A DNA stretch of 64,000 nucleotides from Macrostomum lignano (GCA_002269645.1 NIVC01000691.1:248001-312000), one strand, 5' to 3'. Counted from the first letter of the stretch, positions 1,908 to 44,451 are shown. Notes: generated by a model from the letters alone, not told the origin. Translations and numbers: made by a program.

Positions 1908-3479
1908 TCAACCCCATCGATTATTCTTAGCTTTGGCCGCATCTCTAGACGCCTTCAGGGCCTCCTCGGCTGCCTTCTTAGCCGCCTCGGCCGCCTCTCT
2001 GGCCGCCCGCTCGGACGCCTCTTTGGCCGCTTTCTCGGCCGCCTGGGCCGCCGCCCGCCTAGACGCATCGGCCGCCATTTTAGCCTCAATTTTGGACACC
2101 CGTTTGGCCACTTCATCGGGTTTGTGAATTTTGTCGGAGATTTTGTACAGCTGCTTGTTGACTTTCTTCTGGCCGAAGTTGAACGCACTCTTGGTGACCT
2201 CCTTTGCTATTTCTGCGGTCGATACGGTTGGTTGGTACGCGGAGTATCAAAATAAAGTGTGACTTTGCTAAAAATTTGGGGTCAGTAACATTAACATGCA
2301 CAAGTTAGACATTAGCCTTTGTACGCGTGTACATCATGTACTTTAGGCTAGCTAGGATTTTTGCACGGAGCTGTAATTTAAGTTTGAATAACTTATTAAG
2401 TATCTGATCACGCATTAAGAAATGCATATCAGCGAGAAAATACACAGAACGACTGTTCAGAAGGAAATGTCATTTGCAGCGGGGACATGTCCCCCCCCCC
2501 TACAGTAAAAAATAAGGAGGAACATGCCAATGCTTCGTCTCCACACCCCACCTTTGTTGACCAATTATTAAAATCAATAATTTTGCTTCAGGTCGACAAA
2601 ACAGTCCCTGCGGCGCTAAAATGAGGGCCTGCGGCGCTAAAATGGTGTCTGCAGCGCTAAAATGAGTGCCTGCAGCGCTAAAATGAGTGCCTGCGGCGCT
2701 AAAATGAGTGCCTGCGGCGCTAAAATGGTACCCTGAAGTGCTAAAAGGAGTGCCTGTGGCGCTAAAATGGTACCCTGAAGTGCTAAAATGAGTGCCTGTG
2801 GCGCTAAAATGAGTGCCTGTGGCGCTAAAATGAGTGCCTGCGGCGCTAAAATGAGTGTCTGCGGCGCTAAAATGAGTGCCTGCGGCGCTAAAATGAGTGC
2901 CTGCCGCGCTAAAATGAGTGCCTGAAGTGCTAAAATGAGTGCCTGAAGTGCTAAAATGAGTGCCTGTGGCGCTAAAATGAGTGCCTGTGGCGCTACAATG
3001 AGTGCCTGAAGTGCTAAAATGGTACCCTGAGGCGCTAAAATGGTACCTGCGGCGCTAAAATGAGTGCCTGTGGCGCTAAAATGAGTGCCTGCGGCGCTAA
3101 AATGAGTGCCTGCGGCGCTAAAATGAGTGCCTTAAGTGCTAAAATGAGTGCCTGCGGCGCTAAAATGAGTGCCTGTGGCGCTAAAATGAGTGCCTGCGGC
3201 GCTAAAATGAGTGCCTGCGGCGCTAAAATGAGTGCCTGCGGCGCTAAAATGAGTGCCTTAAGTGCTAAAATGAGAGCCTGTGGCGCTCAATCTGTCCTGC
3301 TCCCTACCATAAAATCCATGGCGACGTCCCTGGTCATATGTACGTGTATGCTTGTGCAAGACTTACCAACAAATTAATAACTTACTAATGGGGCAACACT
3401 CTGCACAGCGGAGAATCCAAAGCAGCAGACAAACTCCAAAGATAATTTGAGACGTGGCAGGCTTCAAGGCAAAGTTCAT
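1908..3479 (-). CDS. Small secreted protein 'A' (132 aa): signal peptide, Lys-rich segment and Ala/Glu/Lys-rich helical tail
   Basis: Exons 3479-3386 and 2212-1908. Exon 1 reads MNFALKPATSQIIFGVCLLLWILRCAECCPI, with donor A|gtaagt (phase 1). The acceptor ccgcag| continues in frame: KIAKEVTKSAFNFGQKKVNKQLYKISDKIHKPDEVAKRVSKIEAKMAADASRRAAAQAAEKAAKE...AKNNRWG*. The intron holds a 21-bp array, like other introns here. Confidence 0.65.
2616..3288. repeat. 21-bp minisatellite GGCGCTAAAATGAGTGCCTGC in the intron of gene A
   Basis: Visible tandem array. ORF 3060-3377 (MSACGAK repeats) is a by-product. Confidence 0.95.
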
Positions 3480-6137
3480 TTGAATCTGGATTGCTAAATG
3501 CTATATTAGTCGTATTCATGCAAATACATGTGCATGTGACCGTCACATTTACGACAAAAAGATCGCTTTTAGAAAATTGAGAAACACCACAAAAAAGAAA
3601 ATATTTGTATATGAACTGCAGATTGGCTAATTTAATTATAAACTGCATGCAATAAAAAATCAAATGGATTAAGCCACAGACAAAACCATGGAGTTAATTA
3701 TATTTACGGAGGAAAATATGTATTTCATAGAAAAAATTGGCAATCATGGTATATACATGTAGTATGTAGCATAGGTAAGATTGTGGGAGTGTGGGGCCAT
3801 GCATGCAATAAGATGTATGTTATATATTACATCTCATGTCCGTATAAAATGTCTTAACTATGAAATGTATACTATACTGACAGAGTGCAGGGCTCAAGCG
3901 GCGCGATTACACCGCGAGGCCCCTAATCGCAATGCAACTTCAAGGTACATGTAAAATACATTTATTTAAACCAAGGTTTAACCTTGGGCTGCGCCCTGCA
4001 GCCCCCGCCAGTAGTCGGCAGGTTCACTGAGGAGACATCGGCGACCCTCATCCGGTGCGGCCCGGTGTCCGACGAAGGTGCGAATGTCACGGATGTTATG
4101 CGGGGTCGTCAGCTCTCGATTTGCTGGACGTGGCCGAGGGAGGCCGTTTTTTAATTACCGCGCCAAATTGAAGTAAATTGGCAGAAGTTGACGTGCAGTG
4201 ATGCTCCGCGGTCTCCAGCTCTTATGAAACAGAAGAGCAGGTGGGAGCGCAACCGGTTTGCAACGAGATGTCTCAGCAGGAAGAATCCATGGCTGGTTAG
4301 GACCATGCACATCTCCCTGAGGTCTACTACTGTTAAGTGAGATCAGCTAGCTACGTGTGTAATTCGATTAGAGATTTTTCCGATCCTGTTCAGGTGTTTG
4401 GCATTGCAGTGCATGCATGCAGGTAGCTGCCTGTAGTCAGCTAGTGCAACTGTTTCAGTGAAGCTGTTGTTGCTAATATTGCGGGAGATTTGCGACCTAA
4501 TGTATTGCAATAGGAATGGGTAAGCATCACCAGACGTGAATTACATAATTGGGTGCTGCCATGCAGCTCCTTGGCGAGGAAATCGCGAACTCATTTCCCA
4601 GCATATTGCTGTGACCGGGTGTCTATAGAATTCTAATCCTGTTAAAAACTGAGAGAGACTACATGCAATACTGCAACAAACTTATTGTATATGTATGTTA
4701 CGAGTACATGTTGTTTTTGATCCATGGTTCTGACTGCATCAAATTTGAACCATTTTTTCTTGTGCCGACTCATCAATTGCCGACATTTTGATCTGATCAA
4801 CGAAACAAAATTCTGCCAAAAGTTTTCTGAAATTTTTCCCAACTCCAGGGAAGATGATCCATTCAAAGAAATAGGAATCAAACCAAAAGCAGCGACTAAA
4901 ATTCACTTACACTACGGTACTATAAAAGCAGGCAAACTACAAAATTGAAATGCAGATTAGATCAATTCAGTTGTCGATGTTGCATCGAAATAATGCAAAA
5001 TATAGCTATACTCTTAAACATAATGTAAAACTATTATATTAAGCAAGCAAATAAGCAAATTTGCTGATACTTAGCTCTGGCTTAATTTTTTGCATCGTTT
5101 CATTTGTCGTTATTATAGAATTTTCACGTAAACAGCGAAGTTACGAAAGTTTGATATTTAAATAGTTTTTTAATTTATCGTACTAGTTAGATATAGATCG
5201 TTCGCTCAACTGTTCAAGCTGCGAACGATGACTGTGATTTGTATAATACAAGATTTGGAATCGCTAACGCAGTCGCAGTCGCCTTGGTAGTTTATTGCAT
5301 GGCTACACTGAATTCTATTTAGCTTTAATATATGTAGCTAACTTCGGAATGTGCAATGACAACTTTAAAGAATGGCTTGTAAAATGACAAATTTGTTTAT
5401 AGCTGAATTAAACATTCTTTCACTCAAATTCTGACCTTAAAATTGGGTGAAACATGCACTGTGCTTTAGTATTTTATTTATAATATTTTATGTTACAATG
5501 AAAAGGGCAAAAATATTTTATATTTTATAATGAAAAAGGTTTGTTTGCTGTTTTGCATGATAAAAATCTATAATGATAACATTTATTAAATACTCAGGTA
5601 TAGAGATAGTAATTACTTAATAACTGAAAAATAATAACTAATAACACTAAAAATATCATTACTATTCAAGTTGATTCTTCTATATTGATTGTATTATTAT
5701 TAATCTAAGCCACTTAGCTAATTCTAAAACAGTTAATATTTTTAATTTTAGCAATGCCTAGTTGTCCAAAGTGGTTATAAAACAAGTGACGTATAGGCTT
5801 TAGATAGAAGTCATTTCATAGCTGAAATTCAAGTAAAAAAATTGAATAAAAATATACCACTATGCTCACTATATTCAGATTTCAATATTGATTCTTAGTA
5901 TAGGGATTTTTCTTAGTATTAATTAGGTGCTTCGCATTCTTAAAAAACAAGAATATAAAAAGAGTGCAGATCATTTCATTATGCTCAGAAATTAAATGGC
6001 TGTTGAAACTTTGATAAATTTTTATAACTTTAGCTTTTGTATAGCTATTCACATATTTGAATAGTTGACTGAACTCTATTTTGCAATTTTCCTTTTCAGT
6101 TTCAAACTATTTATTTTTTTAAGTCTATAAATAAGCC

Positions 6138-13472
<7,335 letters not shown>

Positions 13473-13504
13473 CTGCTTGCCTGCCCTTCAAGACGGTCTG
13501 GATG

Positions 13505-14305
13505 ACAACCTACCAGATCCCCAGTTGCTGGGCCAGCCTCCCAGAGTGTCAGTTGCTGGGCCACCCTCCCAGATCCTCAGTTGCTGAGCCACCAGCCTCC
13601 CAGATCCCCAGTTGCTGGGCCAGCCTCCCAGATCCTCAGTTGCTGGGCCAGCCTCCCAGATCCTCAGTTGCTGGGCCAGCCTCCCAGATCCTCAATTGCT
13701 GAGCCACCAGCCTCCCAGATCCCCAGTTGCTGGACCAGCCTCCCAGATTCTCAGTTGCTAGACCAGACTCCCAGATCCTCAGTTGCTGGGCCAGCCTCCC
13801 AGATCCCCAGTTGCTGGACCAGCCTCCCAGATTCTCAGTTGCTAGACCAGCCTCCCAGATCCTCAGTTGCTGGGCCAGCCTCCCATATCCTCAGTTGCTA
13901 GGCCAGCCTCCCAGAGTGTCAGTTGCTGGGCCAGCCTCCCAGAGTGTCAGTTGCTGGGCCAGCCTCCCAGATCCTCAGTTGCTGGGCCAGCCTCTCAGAT
14001 CCTCAGTTGCTGGGCCAGCCTCTCAGATCCTCAGTTGCTGGACCAGACTCCCAGATCCTCAGTTACTGGGCCAGCCTCTCGGATCCTCAGTTGCTGGACC
14101 AGACTCCCAGATCCCCAGTTGCTGGGCCAGCCTCCCAGATCCTCAGTTGCTGGGCCAGCCTCCCAGATCCTCAGTTGCTGGGCCACCCTCCCAGATCCCC
14201 AGTTGCTGGGCCAGCCTCCCAGATCCTCAGTTGCTGGGCCACCCTCCCAGATCCTCAGTTGCTGGGCCACCCTCCCAGATCCTCAGTTGCTGGGCCAGCC
14301 TCCAG
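13505..14305. repeat. 28-bp minisatellite (CAGATCCTCAGTTGCTGGGCCAGCCTCC) just after the ankyrin stop codon
   Basis: Visible array. It explains the overlapping ORFs 13451-14381. Confidence 0.95.
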
Positions 14306-15029
14306 ACCACCTCATTTTATTGGGCTCTTAGGCGTACATCAGAGCAGAATTTTTTATCGCTTTAAGCAAACATACGAGTAATACACACGTAATATCGGAT
14401 TTCTTCTGAAAAAATTACCCACTTCTACAATGAAGAGTTTTTTTATTAACCCGCGCGCCCCGTGTGATAATGTAAAACTCTAAGGCGGTCTGAGTTTGTT
14501 GCACAGTTTTATCTCTACATGTACTGCACATTGCACAATTATAGGAATTGCTTAGGCTTTTTCTTTATTCCTGGCTGTCGTCCTGTTTGCCTTGCTAGTC
14601 TTTGTGATATTTGTGAAGTTATTTTGTGTTTGGGAGAAATTAGCGCTTTTAGTAGTCATTCCGCTAACCGCCTGAGCACGGGGCACGCAGCTCACACAGG
14701 GTGTACTCGTACAGCGGCCCAGACTTTCAAATCGTCAGTCATGTACATGCACTCTCCGTGCCCTGCAGGTTGGCCTTCAAGCTGAAGTTTTATGATCGAA
14801 ATCTAACTTCAAAGCCACATCGTATATTTGGCGAGCTGCATCATCAGGTTATTTACTTGTTTGCGCGTGTTTATTTTTACATTTATAATTGTAGATGTTG
14901 TTGCTTTCAGACAAAAGAATATAATTGTTTTAACACCCTCCTCTTTTTCTTGCTTTTGTATCTGTCAGAATTTTAATTAAAAAATTATTGAAAACTGGCT
15001 TTTTTGTTTACTTTGATATCCCTATCCTT

Positions 15030-16725
15030 GAGAATCCTCTGCCTTTCCGCTCCATCAATTCTTGAGAATCTGCCTCTCCGCTCCATCAGTCCTTGAGAAT
15101 CTGCCTCTCCGCTTCATCAATACTTGAGAATCTGCCTCTCCGCTTCATCAATACTTTAGAATCTGCCTCTCCGCTTCATCAATACTTGAGGATCTGCCTC
15201 TCTGCTCCATCAATTCTTGAGAATCCTCTGCCTCTCCGCTTCATCAATACTTGAGAATCTGCCTCTCCGCTTCATCAATTCTTGAGAATCTGCCTCTCGG
15301 CTTCATCAATACTTGAGAATCTGCCTCTCCGCTTCATCAATACTTGAGAATCTGCCTCTCCGCTTCATCAATACTTGAGAATCTGCCTCTCTGCACGGAC
15401 TACTAGTGGTCCTTGCCTCTCTGCTTCATCAATACTTGAGGATCTGCCTCTCTGCTCCATCAATACTTGAGAATCCTCTGCCTCTCGGCTTCATCAATAC
15501 TTGAGAATCTGCCTCTCTGCTCCATCAATTCTTGAGAATCCTCTGCCTCTCTGCTTCATCAATACTTGAGGATCTGCCTCTCTGCTCCATCAATTCTTGA
15601 GAATCCTCTGCCTCTCTGCTTCATCAATACTTGAGAATCTGCCTCTCCGCTCCATCAATTCTTGAGAATCCTCTGCCTCTCTGCTTCATCAATACTTGAG
15701 AATCTGCCTCTCCGCTCCATCAATTCTTGAGAATCCTCTGCCTCTCTGCTTCATCAATACTTGAGAATCTGCCTCTCTGCTTCATCAATACTTGAGGATC
15801 TGCCTCTCTGCTCCATCAATACTTGAGAATCCTCTGCCTCTCTGCTTCATCAATACTTGAGGATCTGCCTCTCTGCTCCATCAATACTTGAGAATCTGCC
15901 TCTCTGCTCCATCAATTCTTGAGAATCTGCCTCTCTGCTCCATCAATACTTGAGAATCTGCCTCTCTGCTTCATCAATACTTGAGGATCTGCCTCTCTGC
16001 TCCATCAATACTTGAGAATCCTCTGCCTCTCTGCTTCATCAATACTTGAGGATCTGCCTCTCTGCTCCATCAATTCTTGAGAATCCTCTGCCTCTCTGCT
16101 CCATCAATACTTGAGAATTTGCCTCTCCGCTCCATCAATTCTTGAGAATCCTCTGCCTCTCTGCTCCATCAATACTTGAGAATCTGCCTCTCTGCTCCAT
16201 CAATTCTTGAGAATCCTCTGCCTCTCTGCTCCATCAATACTTGAGAATTTGCCTCTCCGCTCCATCAATTCTTGAGAATCCTCTGCCTCTCTGCTCCATC
16301 AATACTTGAGAATCTGCCTCTCTGCTCCATCAATTCTTGAGAATCCTCTGCCTCTCTGCTCCATCAATACTTGAGAATTTGCCTCTCCGCTCCATCAATT
16401 CTTGAGAATCCTCTGCCTCTCTGCTCCATCAATACTTGAGAATCCTCTGCCTCTCGGCTCCATCAATTCTTGAGAATCCTCTGCCTCTCTGCTCCATCAA
16501 TACTTGAGAATTTGCCTCTCCGCTCCATCAATTCTTGAGAATCTGCCTCTCTGCTCAATCAATACTTGAGAATCTGCCTCTCCGCTCCATCAATACTTGA
16601 GAATCTGCCTCTCTGCTCCATCAATTCTTGAGAATCTGCCTCTCCGCTCCATCAACACTTGAGAATCTGCCTCTCCGCTCCATCAATTCTTGAGAATCCT
16701 CTGCCTCTCCGCTTCATCAATCCTT
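15030..16725. repeat. 31/34-bp minisatellite (TTGAGAATC(CTC)TGCCTCTCYGCTYCATCAATWC)
   Basis: Visible tandem array. Confidence 0.96.
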
Positions 16726-17214
16726 GACGATCTCTCATTTTACTTTTACCGGTAGTCACTTTAAAGTCTACAGTCTAAAAATAAACAATAATTATCGGGG
16801 CCATTTTATCAGAAATAATAATATATCAATAGGTATATACGGAGCTAAGAAGTGTTTTAAAAAATCTGTTCTATTGGTCTGTCTGTGTGTATATATTTCG
16901 CATATTTTCACCGAAATCTCGGCATTGACAAAATTCTCAAAAATATAAATTTTAAAATGCTAGATTACATTTTTGTACTGATTAAAAATCGAATACTATT
17001 TTTTATATACTAACAAACGTATCGCTTAGTTAACAGGGGGAAATAATATACATATTTAATTTATGCGACATAGCAAACAACATCAACAATGCAGAAACTA
17101 TTGTGAGAGTGAAAGTACTCAAGACAAGACAACATGTAAACAGTTTAAAGAGATCTAATGACACTGGATTTTAAGTTCACTATCGGATCCCGATTTACCC
17201 AGCTTTGAGGTTCA

Positions 17215-17620
17215 CAAAAAGCCAATTCGACAGCAACAGAACTGATGACAGCCAATTCGACAGCAACAGAACTGATGACAGCCAATTTGACAGCAACAGA
17301 ACTGATGACAGCCAATTTGACAGCAACAGAACTGATGACAGCCAATTTGACAGCAACAGCAGAACTGATGACAACCAATTTGACAGCAACAGCAGAACTG
17401 ATGACAACCAATTCGACAGCAACAGCAGAACTGATGACAACCAATTTGACAGCAACAGCAGAACTGATGACAACCAATTTGACAGCAACAGCAGAACTGA
17501 TGACAACCAATTTGACAGCAACAGCAGAACTGATGACAACCAATTTGACAGCAACAGCAGAACTGATGACAACCAATTTGACAGCAACAGCAGAACTGAT
17601 GACAGCCAATTTGACAGCAA
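17215..17620. repeat. 30/33-bp minisatellite (AACTGATGACAACCAATTTGACAGCAACAGCAG) downstream of the AIP stop codon
   Basis: Visible array. It explains the repetitive ORFs 17145-17844. Confidence 0.94.
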
Positions 17621-17648
17621 TTAAGACAGTACCGTACAGAACAGACTG

Positions 17649-20564
17649 TCACTCCCCAGCAATGAGTTTTCCCCTAAGCTGCTCTTTCTCCAGGCGCTCC
17701 CTCTCGCGCACCTTATCAGTCAAGTCGCGTACAGCTGCATCGCAGGCCGCAGCCAGGCCCGGGTCCAGCTGGGCAGCCCTAGAGAAATCCTGCTTGGCCT
17801 CAGCCACATCCCATACGGCTGCGTGCGCTTTGGCCCGACGATAAACAGCCTTTACGTTGTCCGGCTCGCGGCTGAGGGCCTCGGTGCACAGCCGGATGGT
17901 CTGGTAGTTGTCGCCTAGCAGCAGCTGGCACTGCGCCAGGTTCAGCAGGAATGGCACCTGAGGAGCGGTTGGACCAGTGCGAGCAGATAGTTGAAAGTAA
18001 ACATTCTTGCTCATGGGGCGCTGTCTTGATGGGCCTGTCTTTAGGGGGTGTCTTGACGGGGTGTCTTAAGGGGGTGTCTTGAGAGGGCTGTCTTGAGAGG
18101 AGTCTTGAGGGGGTGTCTTGAGAGGGCTGTCTTGAGGGGGTGTCTTGAGGAGCCTGTCTTTTTGACCTTTTTGAAAGGGGGCCTTTTTGAAACGGGTGTC
18201 TTGAGGGGTTTGTCCTGAGGGGCCTGTCTTGAGGGGATGTCTTGAGGGGATGTCATGAGGCCTGTCTTGAAGGGGTGTCTTTAAAAGGCCTGTCTTGAAG
18301 GGGTGTCTTTAAAAGGCCTGTCTTGAAGGGGTGTCTTTAAAAGGCCTGTCTTGAAGGGGTGTCTTTAAAAGGCCTGTCTTGAAGGGGTGTCTTTAAAAGG
18401 CCTGTCTTGAAGGGGGTGTCTTGAGGGGTGTCTTGAGGGGCCTGTCCTGAGGGGCCTATCCAGAGGGCCTGTCTTGAGGGGCCTGTCTTGAGGGTTTGTC
18501 TTGAGACCGAGGGGTCTTGTCTTGAGGGGGTGTCTTGAGGAACCTGTCTTGAGGAACCTGTCTTGAGGAGCCTGTCTTGAGGAACCTGTCTTGAGGAGCC
18601 TGTCTTAAGGGGGCCTTTTTGAAACGGGTGTCTTGAGGGGTTTGTCCTGAGGGGTCTGTCCTAAGGGGCCTGTCTTGAGGGGATGTCTTGAGGGGATGTC
18701 TTGAGAGGCCTGTCTTGAAGGGGTGTCTTTAAAAGGCCTGTCTTGAAGGGGTGTCTTTAAAAGGCCTGTCTTGAAGGGGTGTCTTTAAAAGGCCTGTCTT
18801 GAAGGGGGTGTCTTGAGGGGGTGTATTGAGGGGCCTGTCCTGAGGGGCCTATCCTGAGGGCCTGTCTTGAGGGGCCTGTCTTGAGGGGGTGTCTTGAAAG
18901 GCCTTTCTTTAAATGGTGTCTTGAGGGCCTGTCTTGAGGAGCCTGTCTTGAGGAACCTGTCTTGAGGAGCCTGTCTTGAGGAACCTGTCTTGAGGAGCCT
19001 GTCTTGAGGAGCCTGTCTTGAGGGGGCCTTTTTGAAAGGGGTGTCTTGAGGGGTTTGTCCTGAGGGGTCTGTTTAGAGGGGCCTGTCTTGAGGGAATGTC
19101 TTGAGAGACAGTTTAAAGTGCCAAATAAAATAAAATTGAATAAAATGCAGCAACACCAACCCACACCCACCTTGGCCTTATCCAACTCCAGCCACTTTGT
19201 ATCCTGCGGCCGCTCCATCGCGGCCAGATCCTCCAGCATCGCCAGAGCCTCGGTATACCTGGCAGCCGCATCGGCAGTTTTGCCAGCTTTATAAAGATCG
19301 TTGCCTTCCTGCCGCAGCTGGGGCAGCGCGGCGCGCTTCTCCTCCGGTCGCATAATCCAAGCCTCCTTGCGGAACTCGTGCGGCAGTTTGGCCTCGCGCA
19401 GGTGAAACTCGAATAGTAAGCGCTGCGGCTTTGCCAAGAGGTCGTCAAGGTCTGCGTAACTGCGTATAGGTTTAGGGAGAATTTGAGTGATGATGATGGG
19501 TCACACAGTGGGATAGTGTTTATGGCCACGACATTAGGGCGACGGGATACTTGAGGGGCCTGTAGGAATTAACGACAGTGGGATAATTATAAACTCGGGG
19601 AAATAAGGGATAATTAGGAGATGTGGAACATTAAGGAGTTGGGACTTAGGGATTTGGGATAATTAGAGATGTGGGATAGTTAGGGATGTGAGATAATTTC
19701 AAGATGTGTGGGATAATTACGGATGTGGGATAATTAGGGATGATGGATAATAAAGTATGTGGAAACATTTTAGATTTCAGATAATTATGGATTTGGATTT
19801 GGGATAATTAGGGATTTGGAATAATTTGTGGTGCTGGATAAGGATATTTAAGGATTTGGAATAATTAGTGATGCGGGATAATTATGGATTTGGAATAATT
19901 AGGGATTAGGGATAATTAGGGTTGTGGGATGATTATGGATGTGGGATAATTGGGATGCGGGATAATTAGGGATGTGACATAAATAGTGTGGGATAAATAG
20001 GGAATTGGGGTGATTAGGAATGTGGGATAATTGGGATGCGGGATAATTAGGGATTAGAGATTAATGAGTAGGAATAAGAATGAAGCATAAAACCATATGG
20101 AAATAAAGTATTAAAAACTCCAAACAAAAGTGCAACTTAATAACTAACCCTAATCCGCCACCATCTCGAACTCCGGCCATTCCACAGCAGTGAGCAGACT
20201 TCCTATCCAGCAGGTAATCCCGCAGCTTCCTGTATTGCACAGGGAACAGGCCCAGCTGCTCGGGCTCCACGGCGAACTCCGCCACCTCGCCAGGTCGCAT
20301 GGTTTCCAAGCAGGTCTCCCAGAAGCCGATCTGGAAGCCGCGGCCGCTGTACAGGGAGACTGGACGCTTTGGATGAAGTCGGGAATCGTCAAGCACAGCG
20401 CCTGTGGTAGCAACTCGAACCACGAAATCGAATGCGAAATGACTCTCTGTTGGATAGGACGGCGGAGATGAAGCACTGCCGGAGTCTGGGGCGGTGCTCA
20501 AAACTCTCTTGCTGATTCCATCGGCTATGGTGACAGTGTCAGGGGCTTCATTGGTAGTGGCCAT
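17649..20564 (-). CDS. AIP: AH receptor-interacting protein (AIP/AIPL1 family): FKBP-type domain plus TPR repeats, 337 aa
   Basis: Exons 20564-20149, 19459-19171, 17957-17649, phases 2 and 0. Motifs match human AIP as I recall it: DDSR..GRGFQIGFWETCLETMRPGEVAEF, HCCGMA, LGYADLDDLLAKPQRLLFEF, RQEGNDLYKAG, PFLLNLAQCQL, DNVKAVYRRAKAHAAVWDVAEAKQDF..LDP. Confidence 0.93.
18020..19110. repeat. GTCTTGAG-core degenerate minisatellite filling AIP intron 2
   Basis: Visible array between exons 2 and 3. Confidence 0.92.
19570..20080. repeat. Degenerate GGGATAATTAG repeat in AIP intron 1
   Basis: Recurrent GGGATAATT motifs at short, irregular spacing. Confidence 0.8.
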
Positions 20565-20751
20565 GGTGTTGGGGTTTAGCAGGAATAGTTAAAGTACAGA
20601 TGCTAGATAGTGAAAGCCAAAATGGCTAGGTTTACAGCAAAACTGGTTACTTTTTGTGAAAAACCTTTATATCAATGATATAGCAAAATAATTCATATAA
20701 TCCATATACCAATACATACGACAATAATATTAAATAATAATTGATTACACC

Positions 20752-21248
20752 CCATAGTCAGGAAGGTGTCCAGTGTATGCTGGAATGATGAATGAGAATT
20801 TTTTCTGTGCACACCACATTACACCAAAGTGCAAAACCCCAAAATAATTACCTGTGGGCCACATACCAAAGTCAATAATTGAAATATCAAAAAATCAAAA
20901 TATTGAAAAATATACTTACCATACATTACTATAACAAAACAATTTTAATAATAGCAATTTTTTTAATGAAGTTGCCATACCATATAAAATATGGCCATTT
21001 CAGTTTATTTTAAACTTTCTACTATCAATATAGTAAAATAATGTTTACAAATTTGAATGTGAGTTAAATAGCATTATATATATGTAGACATAGACACAAT
21101 GTTGAAGGCATAGCTTTCAGCATGCCAAATTTCTTAGATTCTAATATAAGCCAAAAATTTTCTAGAGCCATAGCGCACGCCAAACTGTACACCAAGATTT
21201 TTTTGCATACCAGAATTCTCTAGTGTATGGATGCCTTCTAGGCTATGG
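20752..21248. mobile_element. MITE copy 1 (TIR CCATAGTCAGGAAGGT family), degenerate
   Basis: Left TIR at 20752-20767 and a degenerate inverted copy at 21232-21248. Flanks ATTACACC and ATTATACT match 6/8 as a putative TSD. Confidence 0.55.
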
Positions 21249-21341
21249 ATTATACTTGCCCTAATGGCTGTTCAGTCTAACAAATAGGGGGTTGCCACAA
21301 CCAACGTCAATTACCCTAGCTAATGCTGGTATCCACTTTAA

Positions 21342-22037
21342 CTATACTCAGGAAGGTAGCCTGCACGCGGGAATTTTCCCGCATGCACAAGCCACGCTAA
21401 AATTTTGGTGTGCAAATTTGGCATGCAAATAGGGGTCTCAAGCCACGCCTAAATTTTCAGCGCACAAGTTTTTTACTTGGCGTGTAACCTTGGCGTGCAA
21501 TTACAAATTGACAGTATATCAACAAGTCAGATATAGATGTATACACTATATATATACAATATATAAAGTTAAACGTGAACAATTGAATTTGAATATTGAT
21601 TAAACCAACTAGTTGAGGCTACAGCATACAGCCTAGCCTACAGCCAGGCCTACACTCTACAGCCTACATTAAAATTAAAATATCCAATAACTTTTAAACG
21701 CTCTTATTTTGTGACTCTTATAGACTTTTAGTTTATTTGTTTCTTGAAATGTGAAGAAAAAGTTTTTGATACTCACTATGTTCTTTGTAGCAAATTTCCT
21801 TTTTTTATATAAACTTTGTTTAACGTAAGTAGAAAATTTATTTAAAAATAGTATCTAATACGGTTAATATTCAAATCACACATACATGAGGCATACATGA
21901 TTTTTGGTATTCAAGATTTTTGGTGTGCAACAGAAATGTCATGTTAAGGGTTTTAAAAAATTGGCGTACATTGGCATGCACCAAGGATTTTTCTATAAAT
22001 TGATTCCCGCGTGCACTTGCCACCTTCCTGACTATGG
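21342..22037. mobile_element. MITE copy 2, about 33-bp TIRs and 8-bp TSD (hAT-like)
   Basis: CTATACTCAGGAAGGTAGCCTGCACGCGGGAAT (21342-21374) is inverted to ATTCCCGCGTGCACTTGCCACCTTCCTGACTATGG (22003-22037). Flanks CACTTTAA and CACTTTAC match 7/8. Confidence 0.75.
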
Positions 22038-22106
22038 CACTTTACAGCTGTGTGAACTGAAGCTGTGCAGAGTTAAATGTATTACTCAGACACAAATTTT
22101 TCCAAT

Positions 22107-22175
22107 GGGATCAAGAATCAAACCCCTAACCTTCAAGCCATGAGTCTGATGCTCTAACCACCAGGCTATAACCAC
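22107..22175 (-). pseudogene. Degenerate tRNA-Met(CAT)-like sequence (tRNA pseudogene or SINE head)
   Basis: The minus strand reads TAGCCTGGTGGTTAGAGCATCAGACTCATGGCTTGAAGGTTAGGGGTTTGATTC. It has an A-box-like part, CAT in an anticodon-loop context and a decayed T-loop. The stems do not pair fully. Confidence 0.5.
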
Positions 22176-24062
22176 TAGGATATATAACCATACATGTCTA
22201 AAATTTTTGAATTCCAAGATGCATATGAAGCACAGATTTTTAAAATCCTCAGGTTCCCCAACAGATTTTATACAAATATTGATATGTTTAAAATGCCTTA
22301 TAAAATTTTATTATTACTATATAAACAAGGCCTAAGCAATATGCTTAGCATATCAATAAGAAACATTCTCTACCCAATTCATCCTACCCATTTTTGGTAG
22401 TCTTGGAAATCAAACAATTAGGTCTAAGCCTTTTAAATAGTTATATAATAGATTTGAACTATATTTTTTTTCAAATTCAAGTAAGACAAAGAAATGAAGT
22501 TTATAGACTTAATTTAGATTAAGATTTGTCATTTGAATACTAAGTAATTGGGTAATGTTACTAATAATTAACTTTTAATAAGTAGCCTAAAAAAGATTCA
22601 AGACTAGCTTACATAATAGGCCCCCTAATCTTTAATAATAATACATAATGCTATAATTAATAGGCATAGGCCTATCTACAAAAAAATTTAATTCTATGTG
22701 GCATGCTGAGTTTTGAAGCTAAATATGCACTAGGGCCTAGTGACTAACTAAAATTTAAATTTAATTTGAATTGATAATATAGATAGAAAGCCTCTAGGTA
22801 ATAAAATTTTATTGGAAGTGCTTATCCCCATGATCCCATGCTGATAATTCCAATTTTATCCACATGGATCCATGTTGATAATTTCCAACTTATCTCCACA
22901 GCAGCTTATTGAAATAGCTGCTACCATTCAAGTCTATAGGCCATGTCAATAATTCCAATTTTATCTACACAGATCTGTGTTGATAATTTTTAGCTTATCC
23001 CCATGGCAGCTTATTGGAATAGAGAACCTTAAAATAAATCTGTTAAAAACTCATATCTACCACTGTATCACCAATACGAACTACTTAGTAACTGCATGTT
23101 ACATGTACACACACTTGGATGGATCCTGGAAGTGCAGTGTAAGTCCACGTCAATGATAGATGCGATTGATGTCATGATGTGAGTCGTGACCCTTACTTGG
23201 CCAGCCAGGGCTCCATTGAACAAAAAAATATTAGCGGCCCCTCCCATTTGAATTTAGCGTTTATCCTGGAATTTAGAAACGGTGGTTTATTTAAACAAAA
23301 AGCACTCGTCGCATTTCATTAATTATTGCTGCTAGCATTCTCTTTTATAAAAAGGGTAGCTTGGTCTCCGACTAAAAACAAAAAAATTATTGCCCCTAGC
23401 TTGAACTTCGAAAAAACTACAAAGACGTAATGTAACTTCGGCTCATTTAATTTTTTTTCGGACTAGACTAGCTAACGTCGGAATCATTGATGCAAGACCA
23501 AGGACCAAGTTGTTATATTTACATCGCTTGAATAGGCTTATACCACAGGCACAAACTCACTGACTACAAGGTAAAACCTTGAATAATTGAATAATTGAAG
23601 TAATATGCTTTTTCGTGGACTATACATGTATAAGTTTAGAAATCTAGATCGACCATGCAAATATTGTCGTTGATCCAGTCCCGAGTATTGAGCAGTCCTT
23701 GGTCAGGGAATAGATGCAGAATTTAATACTAATTTTAACACGTTTTAAGACGCACTTAATTAAGGAAGTATTGCGCCTAGTGTTCATTGGCCCTTTTATA
23801 AGAATTATTTGGCTCTATACTAGCAATAATTGTCTCTAAGATCCTCAGTATTGTCCCCTGCATGCATGCAGTCTCCTGCTTCCAAAATATATTATCAAGA
23901 TATTAGGCTATAAGGTATACGTCAGGTAAAATCTTGGCTACAGTCTGTACTCCATCCATCATAATTAATTTCGGCAAAGACGCTTCTCCATTACCTCCAG
24001 CTATCATCGTCACTATTATTTCTTGCATGTAAAATGTAATTTATATGTTGCACAGCACATTC

Positions 24063-24410
24063 TCATTCTCGTAAACCTTCGCTGCTTTCATTGGCATCTG
24101 GAGCGGCACTTATACTTGTACTGTACACTCAGAAGATCTACATGTAGATCCACAGGTACACCTGTACATGCATATACATGTAGTTTCTCACAGGACTGCA
24201 GGCTCTGGCCGCGGTATCACGTACTTGCTTGATTTCCCGCACTTTCTATAATACACTGGCTATGGTTGAATTAGCAGTCAGAATTAAATTTGGTTGTTAA
24301 TGAGATCCAAAAACTCACAGAACTGATGGCGAAAATATGCTTCATGGGGTTATTTTTAAAATTTTTATGGCACTCTCCACATCTTCCCCAGTCTCTTTGG
24401 CACCTTTCGT
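24063..24410 (-). CDS. Three-exon 3' part of an unknown small Cys-containing protein
   Basis: Exons 24410-24319, 24259-24192, 24120-24063, with GT-AG introns of 59 and 71 nt and consistent phase: xERCQRDWGRCGECHKNFKNNPMKHIFAISS-PVYYRKCGKSSKYVIPRPEPAV-LTSISAAPDANESSEGLRE*. It needs a phase-1 upstream exon. Confidence 0.4.
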
Positions 24411-24569
24411 CTGCGGGGGAGTACTATAGTTCCTCAATCCGTCCTTTCTTCAATCACAATTTCTCAATAATCTATTCCGACGTACATGTATAGCTATATG
24501 GACTCTCCTGAGGATCGGCACGAAGCGCGCGGATACGTACGCATACTCACACTCCTGCTGGGTGTATGG

Positions 24570-25535
24570 CACCATGGTGCTGGCGCCCCTGGTTCTGGCG
24601 CCCCTGGGTCTGGCGCCTCTGGCGGTGCTGGCGCCCCTGGTGCTGGCGCCCCTGGTGCTGGCGCCCCTGGTGTTGGCGCCCCTGGTGCTGGCGCCCCTGG
24701 TGCTGGCGCCCCTGGTGCTGGCGCCCCTGGTTCTGGCGCCCCTGGGTCTGGCGCCTCTGGCGGTGCTGGCGCCCCTGGTGCTGGCGCCCCTGGTGCTGGC
24801 GCCCCTGGTGTTGGCGCCCCTGGTGCTGGCGCCCCTGGTGCTGGCGCCCCTGGTGCTGGCGCCCCTGGTGCTGGCGCCCCTGGTGCTGGCGCCCCTGGTG
24901 CTGGCGCCCCTGGTGCTGGCGCCCCTGGTGCTGGCGCCCCTGGTGCTGGCGCCCCTGGTGCTGGCGCCCCTGGTGCTGGCGCCCCTGGTGCTGGCGCCCC
25001 TGGTGCTGGCGCTCCTGGTGCTGGCGCCCCTGGTGCTGGCGCCCCTGGTGCTGGCGCCCCTGGTGCTGGCGCCCCTGGTGCTGGCGCCCCTGGTGCTGGC
25101 GCCCCTGGTGCTGGCGCCCCTGGTGCTAAAGCCCCTGGTGCTAAAGCCCCTGGTGCTGGCGCCCCTGGTGCTAAAGCCCCTGGTGCTAAAGCCCCTGGTG
25201 CTGGCGCCCCTGGTGCTAAAGCCCCTGGTGCTAAAGCCCCTGGTGCTAAAGCCCCTGGTGCTAAAGCCCCTGGTGCTAAAGCCCCTGGTGCTAAAGCCCC
25301 TGGTGCTAAAGTTCCTGGTGCTAAAGCCCCTGGTGCTAAAGCCCCTGGTGCTAAAGCCCCTGGTGCTAAAGCCCCTGGTGCTAAAGCCCCTGGTGCTAAA
25401 GCCCCTGGTGCTAAAGCCCCTGGTGCTAAAGCCCCTGGTGCTAAAGCCCCTGGTGCTAAAGCCCCTGGTGCTAAAGCCCCTGGTGCTAAAGCCCCTGGTG
25501 CTAAAGCCCATGTTGCTAAAGCCCCTGGTGCTGCA
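24570..25535. repeat. 15-bp GC-rich tandem array GGTGCTGGCGCCCCT grading into GGTGCTAAAGCCCCT, possibly coding
   Basis: Visible array. All length variants keep the frame, and it is open in several frames on both strands. Confidence 0.95.
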
Positions 25536-26075
25536 TGGCGAACTGCTAAAGCTCCTGTCACAGGAACCAAAACTAATTTTCTTTATAAATGCTGAAATAT
25601 AGTACAGTAGCCTGTACATACATGTAGAAACAGACCGTGCAACCCTCAAACATTAGCTACTTGGTCTAAAACATGAATTTAGAAACATGAACTGTTTTGC
25701 TAATTAAGTAAATAATACACTGGCAAGTCATACTGTACGGACAATTAAAAACTACACGCACTGCACATACTACTACACTTACAAATGTGTATATATTCTA
25801 CTGCTAGAGTAGCATGTACATCTCAATGACTTTAATCTAGTATATTTTTTATCAGCCGTAGTACAAAATGAAAGTCTATACGTATAGACGTATAGACCAG
25901 GTGGCATTTACATCTTCCTTATCTTTGTAATAAAAAATATATAAAAGCATTTTACTGACAACTCTACTGAGGCTAAATTCAAAGCAAATTGAACAAACCT
26001 GTACATAAAAAATATCGAGTTAGAAAATGTTGATCTCAGAGTGTTTAAATGATGCCGAAATGATAGCAAGCTGAT

Positions 26076-27286
26076 TTAATGATAGCCCATTAGTCTGCCA
26101 TCCACTGGCGAGTACATTGGGTTGTGTCCCTTCGCCACTTTCTTGTAGCCGCCCAGGAAGTTTAGCGTATCTGCGAGTGTTCAGGGAGTCAAGGGATGGG
26201 TCAAGTGAGTCAGGGATATCTAGTCAAGTGAGTCAGGGATATTTAGTCAAGTGAGTCAGGGATATTTAGTCAAGTGAGTCAGGGATATTTAGTCAAGTGA
26301 GTCAGGGATATTAGTCAAGTGTGTCAGGGATATTTAGTCAAGTGAGTCAGCTAGGATGTTAGTCAAGTGAGTCAGGGATATTAGTCAAGTGAGTCAGCTA
26401 GGATGTTAGTCAAGTGAGTCAGGGATATTAGTCAAGTGAGTCAGGGATATTTATTCAAGTGAGTCAGGGATATTTAGTCAAGTGTGTCAGGGATATTAGT
26501 CAAGTGAGTCAGGGATATTAGTCAAGTGAGTCAGCAATATTTAGTCCAGTGAGTCAGGGATATTAGTCAAGTGAGTCAGGAGATAATATTCAAGTGAGTC
26601 AGGGATATTAGTCAAGTGAGTCAGGGATATTAGTCAAGTGAGTCAGCAATATTTAGTCAAGTGAGTCAGCAATATTTAGTCAAGTGAGTCAGGGATATTA
26701 GTCAAGTGTGTCAGAGATATTTAGTTAAGTGAGTCAGGGGATAATATTCAAGTGAGTCAGGGATATTAGTCAAGTGAGTCAGCAATATTTAGTCCAGTGA
26801 GTCAGGGATATTAGTCAAGTGAGTCAGGAGATAATATTCAAGTGAGTCAGGGATATTAGTCAAGTGTGTCAGAGATATTTAGTTAAGTGAGTCAGGGGAT
26901 AATATTCAAGTGAGTCAGGGATATTAGTCAAGTGAGTCAGCAATATTTAGTCCAGTGAGTCAGGGATATTAGTCAAGTGAGTCAGGAGATAATATTCAAG
27001 TGAGTCAGGGATATTAGTCAAGTGTGTCAGAGATATTTAGTTAAGTGAGTCAGGGGATAATATTCAAGTGAGTCAGGGATATTATTCAAGTAAGTCGGGA
27101 TGTTAGTCGAGTGGGTCAGGAATCTTCAGAAAGAATTTTCAGAAAGAAAGTAGAAAAGCAGAAGAACAGGTTGCTGCTGGTGCGGAACTTACCTCTGGCG
27201 CAGCAGTAAGTGGTGTGGAGCCCAATCAGGAGAATTAGCAGGCACAGGACTAGCTTGGCACTTCCGCCACTGCGTTGCCAAAGCAT
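26076..27286 (-). CDS. Small secreted peptide precursor 'B' (62 aa)
   Basis: Exon 27286-27193 reads MLWQRSGGSAKLVLCLLILLIGLHTTYCCAR, with donor G|gtaagt. Exon 26170-26076 follows acceptor ctcgcag| and reads DTLNFLGGYKKVAKGHNPMYSPVDGRLMGYH*. The N-terminus is hydrophobic and signal-like, and the intron is repeat-filled. Confidence 0.65.
26205..27120. repeat. 22/23-bp minisatellite (AGTCAAGTGAGTCAGGGATATT) in the intron of gene B
   Basis: Visible tandem array. Confidence 0.95.
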
Positions 27287-29033: not shown

Positions 29034-32749
<3,716 letters not shown>

Positions 32750-32826
32750 GTAAGGTATCGACCTGACTGCGAGCTGCCCATGGCAAACTTTCAGTATTCA
32801 GGGATGTTAGGTAAACGCTTTGAGCA

Positions 32827-35188
32827 TCAAAGGCAGCAAGGGTTTTTCTACAGTGGGAAATAAAGATTGTGAATATGAAGTTTCGAGCTTGTGAAGATTA
32901 AAGCTTGTGAAGATCTAATCTTGTGAAGATTCGAGCTTGTGAGGATTCGACCTAGTGAAGTTTGAGCTTGTGAAGATTCGAGCTTGTGAGGATTCGAGCT
33001 TGTGAGGATTCGAGCTTGTGAGGATTCGAGCTTGTGAGGATTCGAGCTTGTGAGGATTCGAGCTTGTGAGGATTCGAGCTTGTGAGGATTCGAGCTTGTG
33101 AGGATTCGAGCTTGTGAGGATTCGAGCTTGTGAGGATTCGAGCTTGTGAGGATTCGAGCTTGTGAAGATTCGAGCTTGTGAAGATTCGAGCTTGTAAAGT
33201 TTGAGCTTGTGAAGATTTGAGCTTGTGGAGATCCAATCTTGTGAAGATTCGAGCTTGTGGAGATCCAATCTTGTGAAGATTCGAGCTTGTGAGGATTCGA
33301 GCTTGTGAAGATTCGAGCTTGTGAAGATTCGAGCTTGTGAAGATTCGAGCTTGTGAGGATTCGAGCTTGTGAAGATTCGAGCTTGTGAAGTTTCGAGTTT
33401 GTGAAGTTTCGAGCTTGTGAAGATTCGAGCTTGTGAAGATTCAAGCTTGTGATGATTCGAGCTTGTGAAGATCCAATCTTGTGAAGATTCGAGCTTGTGA
33501 AGATTCGAGCTTGTGAAGATCCAATATTGTGAAGATTCGAGCTTGTGAGGATTCGAGCTTGTGAAGATTCGAGCTTGTGAAGATTCGAGCTTGTGAAGAT
33601 TCGAGCTTGTGAAGATTCGAGCTTGTGAAGATTCGAGCTTGTAAAGTTTGAGCTTGTGAAGATTTGAGCTTGTGAAGATCCAATCTTGTGAAGATTCGAG
33701 CTTGTGAGGATTCGAGCTTGTGAAGATTCGAGCTTGTGAAGATTCGAGCTTGTGAGGATTCGAGCTTGTGAAGATCCAATCTTGTGAAGATTCGAGCTTG
33801 TGAGGATTCGAGCTTGTGAAGATTCGAGCTTGTGAAGATTCGAGCTTGTGAAGATTCGAGCTTGTAAAGATTCGAGCTTGTGAAGATTCGAGCTTGTGAG
33901 GATTCGAGCTTGTGAAGATTCGAGCTTGTGAAGTTTCGAGTTTGTGAAGTTTCGAGCTTGTGAAGATTCGAGCTTGTGAAGATTCAAGCTTGTGATGATT
34001 CGAGCTTGTGAAGATCCAATCTTGTGAAGATTCGAGCTTGTGAGGATTCGAGCTTGTGAAGATTCGAGCTTGTGAAGATTCGAGCTTGTGAGGATTCGAG
34101 CTTGTGAAGATTCGAGCTTGTGAAGATTCGAGCTTGTGAAGATTCGAGCTTGTGAAGATTCGAGCTTGTGAAGATTCGAGCTTGTAAAGTTTGAGCTTGT
34201 GAAGATTTGAGCTTGTGAAGATCCAATCTTGTGAAGATTCGAGCTTGTGAGGATTCGAGCTTGTGAAGATTCGAGCTTGTGAAGATTCGAGCTTGTGAGG
34301 ATTCGAGCTTGTGAAGATCCAATCTTGTGAAGATTCGAGCTTGTGAGGATTCGAGCTTGTGAAGATTCGAGCTTGTGAAGATTCGAGCTTGTGAAGATTC
34401 GAGCTTGTGAAGATTCGAGCTTGTGAAGATTCGAGCTTGTGAGGATTCGAGCTTGTGAAGATTCGAGCTTGTGAGGATTCGAGCTTGTGAAGATTCGAGC
34501 TTGTGAAGATTCGAGCTTGTGAGGATTCGAGCTTGTGAAGATCCAATCTTGTGAAGATTCGAGCTTGTGAGGATTCGAGCTTGTGAAGATTCGAGCTTGT
34601 GAAGATTCGAGCTTGTGAAGATTCGAGCTTGTGAAGATCCAATCTTGTGAAGATTCGAGCTTGTGAGGATTAGAGCTTGTGAAGATTCGAGCTTGTGAGG
34701 ATTCGAGCTTGTGAAGATTCGAGCTTGTGAAGTTTCGAGCTTGTGAAGATTCGAGCTTGTGAAGATTCAAGCTTGTGAAGATTCGAGCTTGTGAAGATTC
34801 GAGCTTGTGAGGATTCGAGCTTGTAAAGATTCGATCTTGTGAGGATTCAAGCTTGTGAAGATCCAATCTTGTGAAGATTCGAGCTTATGAGGATTCGAGC
34901 TTGTGAAGATCCAATCTTGTGAAGATTTGAGCTTGTGAAACGCCCCGATTAACGAACTCACAAGCAGATACTCAACAAGGTTCAGCATCACATGCTCTCT
35001 TTCTAGACTGGACATTTGTGGCTATAAAAGAATTCGTGCTTTGAAAATGGGGTATTATTCGTACTTCACTAGAGCTAAGTCAATACAGGCCAATATGGTC
35101 ATACCTCAAATTTCCATATCTCTCCTTAGCAGCACGCGCAACCAAGGCCAACGGTTGTGCTGCTCAATATCTGGAATGCTCAGATTTT
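32827..35188 (-). CDS. Possible 3' exons of an unknown antisense gene (...QPLALVARAAKERYGNLS-LEREHVMLNLVEYLL-KNPCCL*)
   Basis: Candidate exons about 35162-35105, 35007-34962 and 32847-32827. Donors are |gtatga and |gtgagt, with a strong acceptor tttatttcccactgtag|. The upstream structure is unresolved and interrupted by stops and the gap. Confidence 0.3.
32876..34938. repeat. 16-bp minisatellite (TTGTGAAGATTCGAGC) with a 543-bp higher-order repeat
   Basis: Visible array. The near-identical ORFs 33441-33779 and 33984-34322 are offset by 543 bp at both ends. Confidence 0.97.
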
Positions 35189-35714: not shown

Positions 35715-36239
35715 NNNNNNNNNNNNNNNNNNNNNNNNNNNNNNNNNNNNNNNNNNNNNNNNNNNNNNNNNNNNNNNNNNNNNNNNNNNNNNNNNNNNNN
35801 NNNNNNNNNNNNNNNNNNNNNNNNNNNNNNNNNNNNNNNNNNNNNNNNNNNNNNNNNNNNNNNNNNNNNNNNNNNNNNNNNNNNNNNNNNNNNNNNNNNN
35901 NNNNNNNNNNNNNNNNNNNNNNNNNNNNNNNNNNNNNNNNNNNNNNNNNNNNNNNNNNNNNNNNNNNNNNNNNNNNNNNNNNNNNNNNNNNNNNNNNNNN
36001 NNNNNNNNNNNNNNNNNNNNNNNNNNNNNNNNNNNNNNNNNNNNNNNNNNNNNNNNNNNNNNNNNNNNNNNNNNNNNNNNNNNNNNNNNNNNNNNNNNNN
36101 NNNNNNNNNNNNNNNNNNNNNNNNNNNNNNNNNNNNNNNNNNNNNNNNNNNNNNNNNNNNNNNNNNNNNNNNNNNNNNNNNNNNNNNNNNNNNNNNNNNN
36201 NNNNNNNNNNNNNNNNNNNNNNNNNNNNNNNNNNNNNNN
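35715..36239. other. Assembly gap (525 N)
   Basis: Run of N. Confidence 1.

Positions 36240-39907: not shown

Positions 39908-44451
<4,544 letters not shown>

Follow-up and report, generated by a model that had tools for sequence, protein, structure and literature searches.

A 64,000-nucleotide stretch of the genome of the flatworm Macrostomum lignano (hereafter the window; contig NIVC01000691.1 of assembly GCA_002269645.1, about 248,001-312,000 as judged from gene spacing) carries on its minus strand two small two-exon genes, here called A and B, which a preliminary description had tentatively joined into one family of secreted peptides. Gene A proves to be one of four paralogues, A, E, C and D, that make up an undescribed, lineage-restricted family of small, Lys-rich helical proteins, predicted to be secreted; E, C and D sit 5-13 kb to the left of position 1 of the window. 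The explanation that we prefer as a whole, at a probability of roughly 0.55, is that A and B are transcribed two-exon genes for small secreted proteins and that A heads an A/E/C/D array, the products of which would act as secreted cationic helical peptides on anionic surfaces. The structural part of this explanation, comprising the gene models, the paralogy and the layout of the cluster, is very probable. The functional part, according to which the products would be secreted, cationic, amphipathic helical peptides of a host-defence-like kind, possibly linked into dimers through Cys, is put forward tentatively.

Gene A and its tandem paralogues

For both A and B, the exon coordinates, the 94-nucleotide (nt) first exons, the phase-1 GTAAGT donors and the Cys pair at residues 28 and 29 that had been described match the minus-strand sequence base for base (Table 1). 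Exon 1 of A (MNFALKPATSQIIFGVCLLLWILRCAECCPI) encodes a predicted signal peptide followed by Cys-Cys-Pro-Ile. Exon 2 encodes a conserved Lys-rich helix and then an Ala/Glu/Lys-rich tail that ends in ...NNRWG. The spliced product of A matches the annotated M. lignano protein Mlig027090 (132 residues; 'hypothetical protein BOX15_Mlig027090g1'; PAA51526.1, PAA78408.1 and PAA90413.1) with 100% identity over 100% of its length, and the spliced product of B matches Mlig014890 (62 residues; 'BOX15_Mlig014890g1' / 'Mlig005836g2'; four accessions, including PAA46534.1) equally well. The claim that annotation based on open reading frames (ORFs) misses these genes thus had to be dropped, as both are already GenBank proteins from a transcript-based annotation (PMC5730564). 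The source of that annotation is genome-guided RNA-seq transcript assemblies alone (made with StringTie/TACO and complemented by a de novo transcriptome, the ORFs being called by TransDecoder; PMC5730564). Because the annotation was built from RNA-seq assemblies, the splice junctions of A and B are junctions of assembled transcripts, and RNA support for them is indirect but real. In a scan of either strand of the window for open exons of the form ATG-N91-GTAAG, A and B are the sole matches, and no other hydrophobic ATG exon in the window has a phase-1 GTRAG donor; as sole matches in these scans, the two exons are not random-sequence artefacts. Both were likewise borne out as true small genes, with N-termini that resemble signal peptides by heuristic prediction.

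Two relatives of A are annotated and stand among the genes called downstream of A on three assembly copies. C (Mlig007395; 146/141 residues, 91-nt exon 1) and D (Mlig011746; 62 residues, 85-nt exon 1) are two-exon genes whose models reproduce the annotated product lengths, and in each the phase-1 GTAAG donor follows directly after G-C-P-[IK]. A further relative, E, lies between A and C and was found by a six-frame scan with a hidden Markov model (HMM) of the conserved region. It is a two-exon gene of 83 residues (MHLATRALLLVGVLLLLSEFIQTGDCCNPAKVIKF...), and its 91-nt exon 1 ends in CCNPA plus one nucleotide ahead of a phase-1 GTAAGC donor. E is intact on all three assembly copies and, having no entry in the protein collection, is unannotated. 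The four genes form a same-strand tandem array in the order A - E - C - D, with A at the 5' end, which terminates at an M16 (insulysin-like) peptidase gene past D. The genes called on three or four near-identical copies in the assembly follow the order B - AIP - Ank - A - C - D - M16 peptidase, where AIP is an AIP-like gene and Ank an ankyrin-repeat gene.

The paralogy is supported by several comparisons. BLASTP gives expectation values of 1.4e-15 for A and C, 1.5e-10 for A and D and 7.5e-10 for C and D, with Smith-Waterman scores above all shuffles; the corresponding comparisons of E against shuffles yield p < 0.0002 (A), 0.0004 (C) and 0.0026 (D). In a leave-one-out HMM test, D scores 37.9 bits and E 25.0 bits, both of which beat all 1000 shuffles. 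The conserved module runs over about 33 residues, starting with the Cys: CPIKIAKEVTKSAFNFGQKKVNKQLYKISDKIH in A, CPISLTKSIVKSSFKGGQRFVNKKLYQLADKIH in C, CPKRVAIAVLKAPYKIFKKEANKGLFKLADKIH in D and CCNPAKVIKFITKAPLKASKKFFNKYMRRRSHR in E. At the start of exon 2 it follows the consensus K-[SA]-x-[FY]-K-x-G-Q-K-x-V-N-K-x-L-Y-x-[LI]-[AS]-D-K-I-H; module residues 29-31 of A (CPI) are encoded in exon 1, at 3387-3395. The tails past the module are mutually unrelated: D has none, that of A is an Ala/Glu/Lys helix, that of C is rich in Pro, Gly and Lys, and that of E in Arg and Lys. Within exon 2 of A, the tail contains a weak, imperfect in-frame 12/24-nt repeat (1986-2044, minus strand), which suggests that it grew through repeat expansion inside the coding sequence.

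The first exons of the family show a different pattern. Their lengths in A, E, C and D are 94, 91, 91 and 85 nt, a family range of 85-94 nt; their nucleotide identity is 32-39%, and the signal peptides align poorly. Each closes with [G/C]-C-(N)-P-x and a single further nucleotide; Pro stands directly after the Cys in A, C and D and two residues on in E. The phase-1 intron, 0.75-1.5 kb long, begins 7-10 nt past the Cys codon and holds a distinct minisatellite in each gene. The model advanced at the outset, in which the signal exon is conserved and the mature exon joined to it evolves fast, is therefore reversed in the sequences of A, E, C and D: the signal exons diverge, and the start of the mature exon is kept.

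The assembly contains three to four copies of the region B-AIP-Ank-A-E-C-D (NIVC01000110.1, NIVC01000691.1, NIVC01003410.1 and NIVC01004815.1). These are about 95-99.8% identical in the non-repeat segments compared, and intron lengths differ by minisatellite copy number. The multi-copy region fits the redundancy that the genome paper reported for DV1, a line with additional large chromosomes. On the most divergent assembly copy, B shows four synonymous and no non-synonymous differences, with flanks 4-5% divergent; B is a constrained coding gene. Between copies of D, there are again four synonymous and no non-synonymous differences, with flanks 1.3-2.8% divergent. Identity among the copies of A was considered as a sign of purifying selection and rejected, as flanks and intron are equally identical.

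Annotation noise, in the form of short ORFs of spurious transcripts in a repeat-rich region, is a very improbable account of these genes. The very short proteins, the failure to find a homologue outside the species, and gene E, which is unannotated and evolves neutrally, would agree with it, but noise would not be expected to combine signal-like N-termini and canonical GTAAGT...CAG sites in a shared phase with significant paralogy among four genes. Moreover, the copies of B and D differ by synonymous changes only, and the models derive from RNA-seq assemblies.

Possible kinship of gene B with the family

Exon 1 of B (MLWQRSGGSAKLVLCLLILLIGLHTTYCCAR) encodes a predicted signal peptide and then Cys-Cys-Ala-Arg. 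The motifs quoted for the second exons, NFGQKKVNK in A and NFLGGYKKVAK in B, are both present. The mature peptide of B is weakly cationic (net +3) and contains three helix-breaking Pro residues; the structure predicted for B is a single helix that fades into disorder.

A and B may form one family by virtue of a shared signal exon, the mature exon of B having either diverged beyond recognition or been swapped by exon shuffling through the phase-1 intron, and we rate this at slightly less than even odds. The spacing in B equals that in A, C and D, with the last Cys codon followed by two codons, one nucleotide and the donor (C29-A-R + 1 nt + GTAAGT), and B has the Cys pair, as do A and E. B shares the strand of the array and lies 22.6 kb upstream of A; apart from A and B, the window holds no gene for a small secreted protein. 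However, two unrelated genes, AIP and the opposite-strand Ank, lie between B and A, whereas A, E, C and D are contiguous. Across 87 kb of the contig, all five genes (A-E) have a Cys 3-5 codons ahead of a phase-1 GTRAG donor. Just one further genuine signal-like exon occurs there, in the neighbouring M16 peptidase gene, and it too is followed by a phase-1 intron at the end of the signal peptide, but lacks the Cys. Animal genes in general commonly have a phase-1 intron where the signal peptide ends. As a hallmark, the described exon 1 thus survives in part: a Cys or Cys-Cys before a phase-1 donor recurs in E, C and D, which were found independently of it through their exon-2 similarity, but the combination of 94 nt and Cys-Cys is no family signature, since exon-1 length varies among the proven members and C and D have one Cys. 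Ungapped exon-1 identity is 27-39% over every pair including B, and the 37% between A and B is near the random level.

Scores for the mature part of B point mostly away from the family. A five-sequence family HMM gives B 5.3 bits, a score reached by 0.5% of shuffles, but this alignment spans just the hydrophobic stretch and the Cys pair, and shuffling destroys signal peptides, which makes the null a lenient one. With an HMM of the mature module only, B scores 1.9 bits (p = 0.016), compared with 25 and 37.9 bits for the controls, and the Lys-rich helix that opens exon 2 in the family is not found in B, nor is the Pro after the Cys; its net charge of +3 compares with +8 to +18. The F-x-G-G-x-x-x-V-x-K of B does align gap-free to C. 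The shared exon-2 motif, offered earlier as a sign of kinship, does not exceed chance in Smith-Waterman comparisons of the exon-2 peptide of B with shuffles (p = 0.06 for A, 0.18 for C, 0.35 for D and 0.89 for E). The six-frame HMM scan picks up all other members, but exon 2 of B is absent from its roughly 60 matches at E <= 10, and BLASTP of B in two-sequence searches returns E = 0.036 (A), 2.6 (C) and 2.9 (D). With a predicted signal peptide (heuristic) and the Cys-to-donor spacing of the family on the one hand and an unlike mature exon on the other, the choice between B as a strongly diverged family outlier and B as an unrelated orphan gene is about evenly balanced.

The introns add nothing to this comparison. 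That of A is 58% a 21-nt minisatellite (2603-3287, about 33 copies), and that of B is 93% tandem repeat with a unit of about 22/45/68 nt (array 26200-27120) unrelated to the unit in A. Repeat-filled introns are indeed present in both genes, as had been pointed out, but they are generic in a window that is 41% tandem repeat, mostly minisatellites of 14-35 nt. Genome-wide, simple and tandem repeats amount to 15% and the mean intron measures 1.1-1.4 kb (PMC5730564). Given such a window and such introns, a repeat-filled intron of about 1 kb is background and no shared derived character. As evidence of common origin, shared intron repeats were rejected; the five introns carry five different units.

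It is unlikely that a Macrostomum-specific signal-exon cassette, ending in Cys-Cys and with a phase-1 intron behind it, was combined with mature exons that are unrelated between A/E/C/D and B. On that reading, the mature exon of A/E/C/D would supply a cationic helix, with tails that grew out of in-frame minisatellite-like repeats, and that of B a different short peptide. If this were so, the locus would be a young, still-diversifying source of secreted effector peptides for defence or reproduction that arose within the lineage. An undescribed, lineage-restricted secreted family of the sort first proposed does exist, then, in A, E, C and D, but its clear relatives lie beyond the window, and the kinship of B is unproven. 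The cue from exon architecture led to a real family, yet the pairing made within the window drew partly on generic features.

Predicted products and their possible roles

In all five proteins, a short N-terminal region leads into 12-18 uncharged hydrophobic residues, IIFGVCLLLWIL in A and the 12-residue LVLCLLILLIGL in B. Heuristically, small residues occupy positions -3 and -1 right before the conserved Cys in all five, as in GHG/CP, ADG/CP and AEC/CP (the slash marks the putative cut); the last is the candidate site of A, and TYC/CA and CCA/RD are the candidates in B. The helical hydrophobic moment of the module is 0.54-0.59, with A at 0.59, and the net charge from the Cys onward is +8 in D (the mature form of which has 37 residues), +12 in A and +18 in C. 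Past the predicted signal peptide, C and D each contain a single Cys. The C-terminus is Gly in A (...RWG) and Gly-Arg in C (...AMGR); D, E and B carry no amidation signal. For A, AlphaFold2 predicts a signal helix at residues 7-25, a helix at 30-61 and a long helix at 63-131, an all-helical arrangement without a compact fold (predicted local distance difference test, pLDDT, 75.6; predicted template-modelling score, pTM, 0.32).

From these features, we envisage that the proteins enter the secretory pathway, would be cleaved next to the conserved Cys and would be released as strongly cationic peptides that pass from an unfolded to a helical state. In the manner of linear amphipathic host-defence peptides, they may then bind anionic surfaces, for instance those of microbial membranes, mucus or glycans. 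Disulfide-linked dimers could form through the lone N-terminal Cys, and the terminal Gly in A and Gly-Arg in C are possible amidation signals.

The same C-termini would suit neuropeptide or hormone precursors, from which the signal is removed and which are cut at basic sites to leave an amidated C-terminus. Such a role is improbable. A, C and E do contain KK, KR and RRR sites, and these are small genes with predicted secreted products and no known domain. However, what is conserved is a helix of 30 residues that opens the mature protein, and no short peptide with dibasic sites on either side; an amidation signal is missing from D and E, and the basic residues are distributed along the helix in the way of an amphipathic peptide and mark out no repeated peptide copies.

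Gland products without a part in defence, such as seminal-fluid (prostate) proteins, adhesive- or releasing-gland proteins and rhabdite or mucus proteins, are a somewhat stronger alternative, although still an unlikely one. Protein classes of the gland, seminal and mucus type are typically lineage-specific and fast-evolving in Macrostomum, and an orphan family of tandem duplicates with variable tails would be in keeping with them. Rapid evolution of reproduction-related Macrostomum genes has been reported (PMC7336406). Against this, none of the gene identifiers occurs in the searchable supplements of PMC7336406 (three-species RNA-seq) or PMC5816591 (germline/neoblast), a weak objection given that these supplements may be incomplete or may use other identifiers.

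In terms of known systems, the secreted, host-defence-like peptides that we prefer would resemble cecropins and the pleurocidin/piscidin type, with which they share a small signal-peptide precursor, one intron near the end of the signal and tandem gene clusters. As in the cecropin type, the mature peptide is Lys-rich with a predicted helix-hinge-helix (mature D, 37 residues, +8) and there is a possible Gly amidation signal (A and C). By contrast, no sequence relationship exists, the cecropin family PF00272 is not listed in a Pfam-A hmmscan of A-D at E <= 1, and cecropin-type families are without the conserved N-terminal Cys-Pro of the flatworm family; in addition, the tails of A and C, at 70-85 residues, far exceed classical cecropin-type peptides, and activity of the flatworm peptides is predicted only. 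Genes of the dermaseptin type from frog skin also have two coding exons with the signal in the first, and form lineage-specific tandem families of secreted peptides. In the flatworm family, however, the polarity is reversed, with signal exons of 32-39% nucleotide identity and variable length and a conserved exon-2 start, and there is no acidic pro-piece.

Within the same phylum, the helminth defence molecules (HDMs) of trematodes, which are small, secreted and cationic, are comparable, by description only, as signal-peptide precursors of about 60-130 residues with a predicted amphipathic helix and a restricted taxonomic range. The amphipathic helix of HDMs is C-terminal. In the M. lignano family, by contrast, the conserved helix is N-terminal, and for a free-living worm a host-directed role is inapplicable. 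The arminins and periculins of Hydra likewise come from tandemly duplicated orphan genes that lack homologues beyond their lineage, and combine a signal peptide with a cationic region; they show no sequence similarity to the flatworm proteins, and the anionic pro-region of arminins is missing from the flatworm family.

Database searches found no relatives outside M. lignano. A profile search of 5.8 billion clustered proteins found only A, C and D, as did a full HMMER scan of 1.84 billion representatives, with no trematode protein in either. Single-sequence searches with A and B found no relative beyond M. lignano, and no homologue was found among metagenome contigs. All matches listed when A, B, C and D were searched against Pfam-A with hmmscan (E <= 1) fall far below the cut-offs. 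PDB sequences include no relative (best E = 0.29), and Foldseek against the PDB gave 0 matches. D bears the name 'NTR domain-containing protein' (UniRef100_A0A1I8IU74), an assignment that we rejected, there being no Pfam NTR/TIMP match at E <= 1; such a domain is taken to have >100 residues with several disulfides. As D has 62 residues, one Cys after the signal peptide and no Pfam match, the label is probably an automatic mis-annotation. No mention of Mlig027090, Mlig014890, Mlig005836, Mlig007395 or Mlig011746 was found in the full-text literature, and the same five identifiers are absent from the searchable supplement text of PMC5730564, PMC5816591, PMC5946080, PMC7336406, PMC12896417 and PMC12732829. 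A search for literature on Macrostomum antimicrobial peptides or a single-cell atlas found nothing relevant.

Several points weigh against the explanation that we prefer. Composition and predicted helicity are the sole basis of the proposed function, and both the signal peptides and their cleavage sites are heuristic predictions. The amphipathicity of the module exceeds that of shuffles with nominal significance only, at p = 0.013 for A, 0.028 for C and 0.118 for D. The searches that found no homologue have low power, as a 25-bit relative such as E fails E = 0.001 among 1.8 billion proteins, and this assembly was the one Macrostomum genome or transcriptome that they covered. Being near-identical over their whole length, the copies of A carry no information on constraint. 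Between the copies of E there are 10 non-synonymous and 3 synonymous differences, and exon 2 is 6% divergent compared with 4-5.6% for the flanks; E thus evolves about neutrally and may be decaying, which fits its absence from the transcript-based annotation.

The cluster is an undescribed orphan tandem array of a familiar kind, that of small secreted cationic peptides. It displays the diversification of a short secreted protein, in which an N-terminal helix is kept and the tails are freely replaced, one of them partly from an in-frame repeat. M. lignano is a transgenic model flatworm, in which a compact, promoter-defined cluster would give an accessible way into innate defence or secretory-gland biology; to our knowledge, little is known of either in flatworms at the molecular level.

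Coordinates, neighbouring genes and repeats

Table 1. Genes A-E and the neighbouring genes of the window. Positions count from the first nucleotide of the window unless another numbering is given.
Feature	Position	Strand	Details
A coding exon 1	3386-3479	minus	ATG at 3479; 94 nt = 31 codons + 1 nt; MNFALKPATSQIIFGVCLLLWILRCAECCPI
A intron	2213-3385	minus	1173 nt; acceptor ...CGCAG
A coding exon 2	1908-2212	minus	305 nt including TGA stop
A family-defining module	2124-2212	minus	residues 32-61; CPIKIAKEVTKSAFNFGQKKVNKQLYKISDKIH; kept in paralogues C, D and E
B coding exon 1	27193-27286	minus	ATG at 27286; 94 nt; MLWQRSGGSAKLVLCLLILLIGLHTTYCCAR + 1 nt
B intron	26171-27192	minus	1022 nt
B coding exon 2	26076-26170	minus	95 nt including TAA stop; DTLNFLGGYKKVAKGHNPMYSPVDGRLMGYH
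E exons	18449-18539 + 19432-19592 (local numbering, stretch L003); contig ~241,888-243,031	minus	from six-frame HMM scan
C	contig NIVC01000691.1 ~238,276-240,230	same as A	annotated
D	contig NIVC01000691.1 ~235,283-236,325	same as A	annotated
Ankyrin-repeat protein	6138-13472	plus	
AIP-like FKBP/TPR protein	17649-20576	minus	
ASC/ENaC-type channel	31616-~37000	plus	large exon 31616-32863
ODAD1-like coiled-coil protein (outer dynein arm docking)	41177-44451	minus	
LIM-homeobox gene	52000-60383	plus	LIM domain 52107-52547; homeodomain end '...VWFQNARAKFRR' at 60012-

A run of 525 N (35715-36239) marks an assembly gap in or beside the gene for the amiloride-sensitive sodium channel (ASC). Nearly all introns and intergenic stretches of the window have tandem arrays of their own, for example at 1-1715 (19-mer x 91), 32876-34939 (16-mer x 129) and 54863-57629 (23-mer x 121). 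The cores GGCGCTAAAAT and CCTGCGGC are common to the 21-mer array in the intron of A and to the 35-mer arrays in the region of the LIM-homeobox gene (53985-54253 and 58756-59085), which suggests a dispersed family of related minisatellites, possibly of mobile-element origin.

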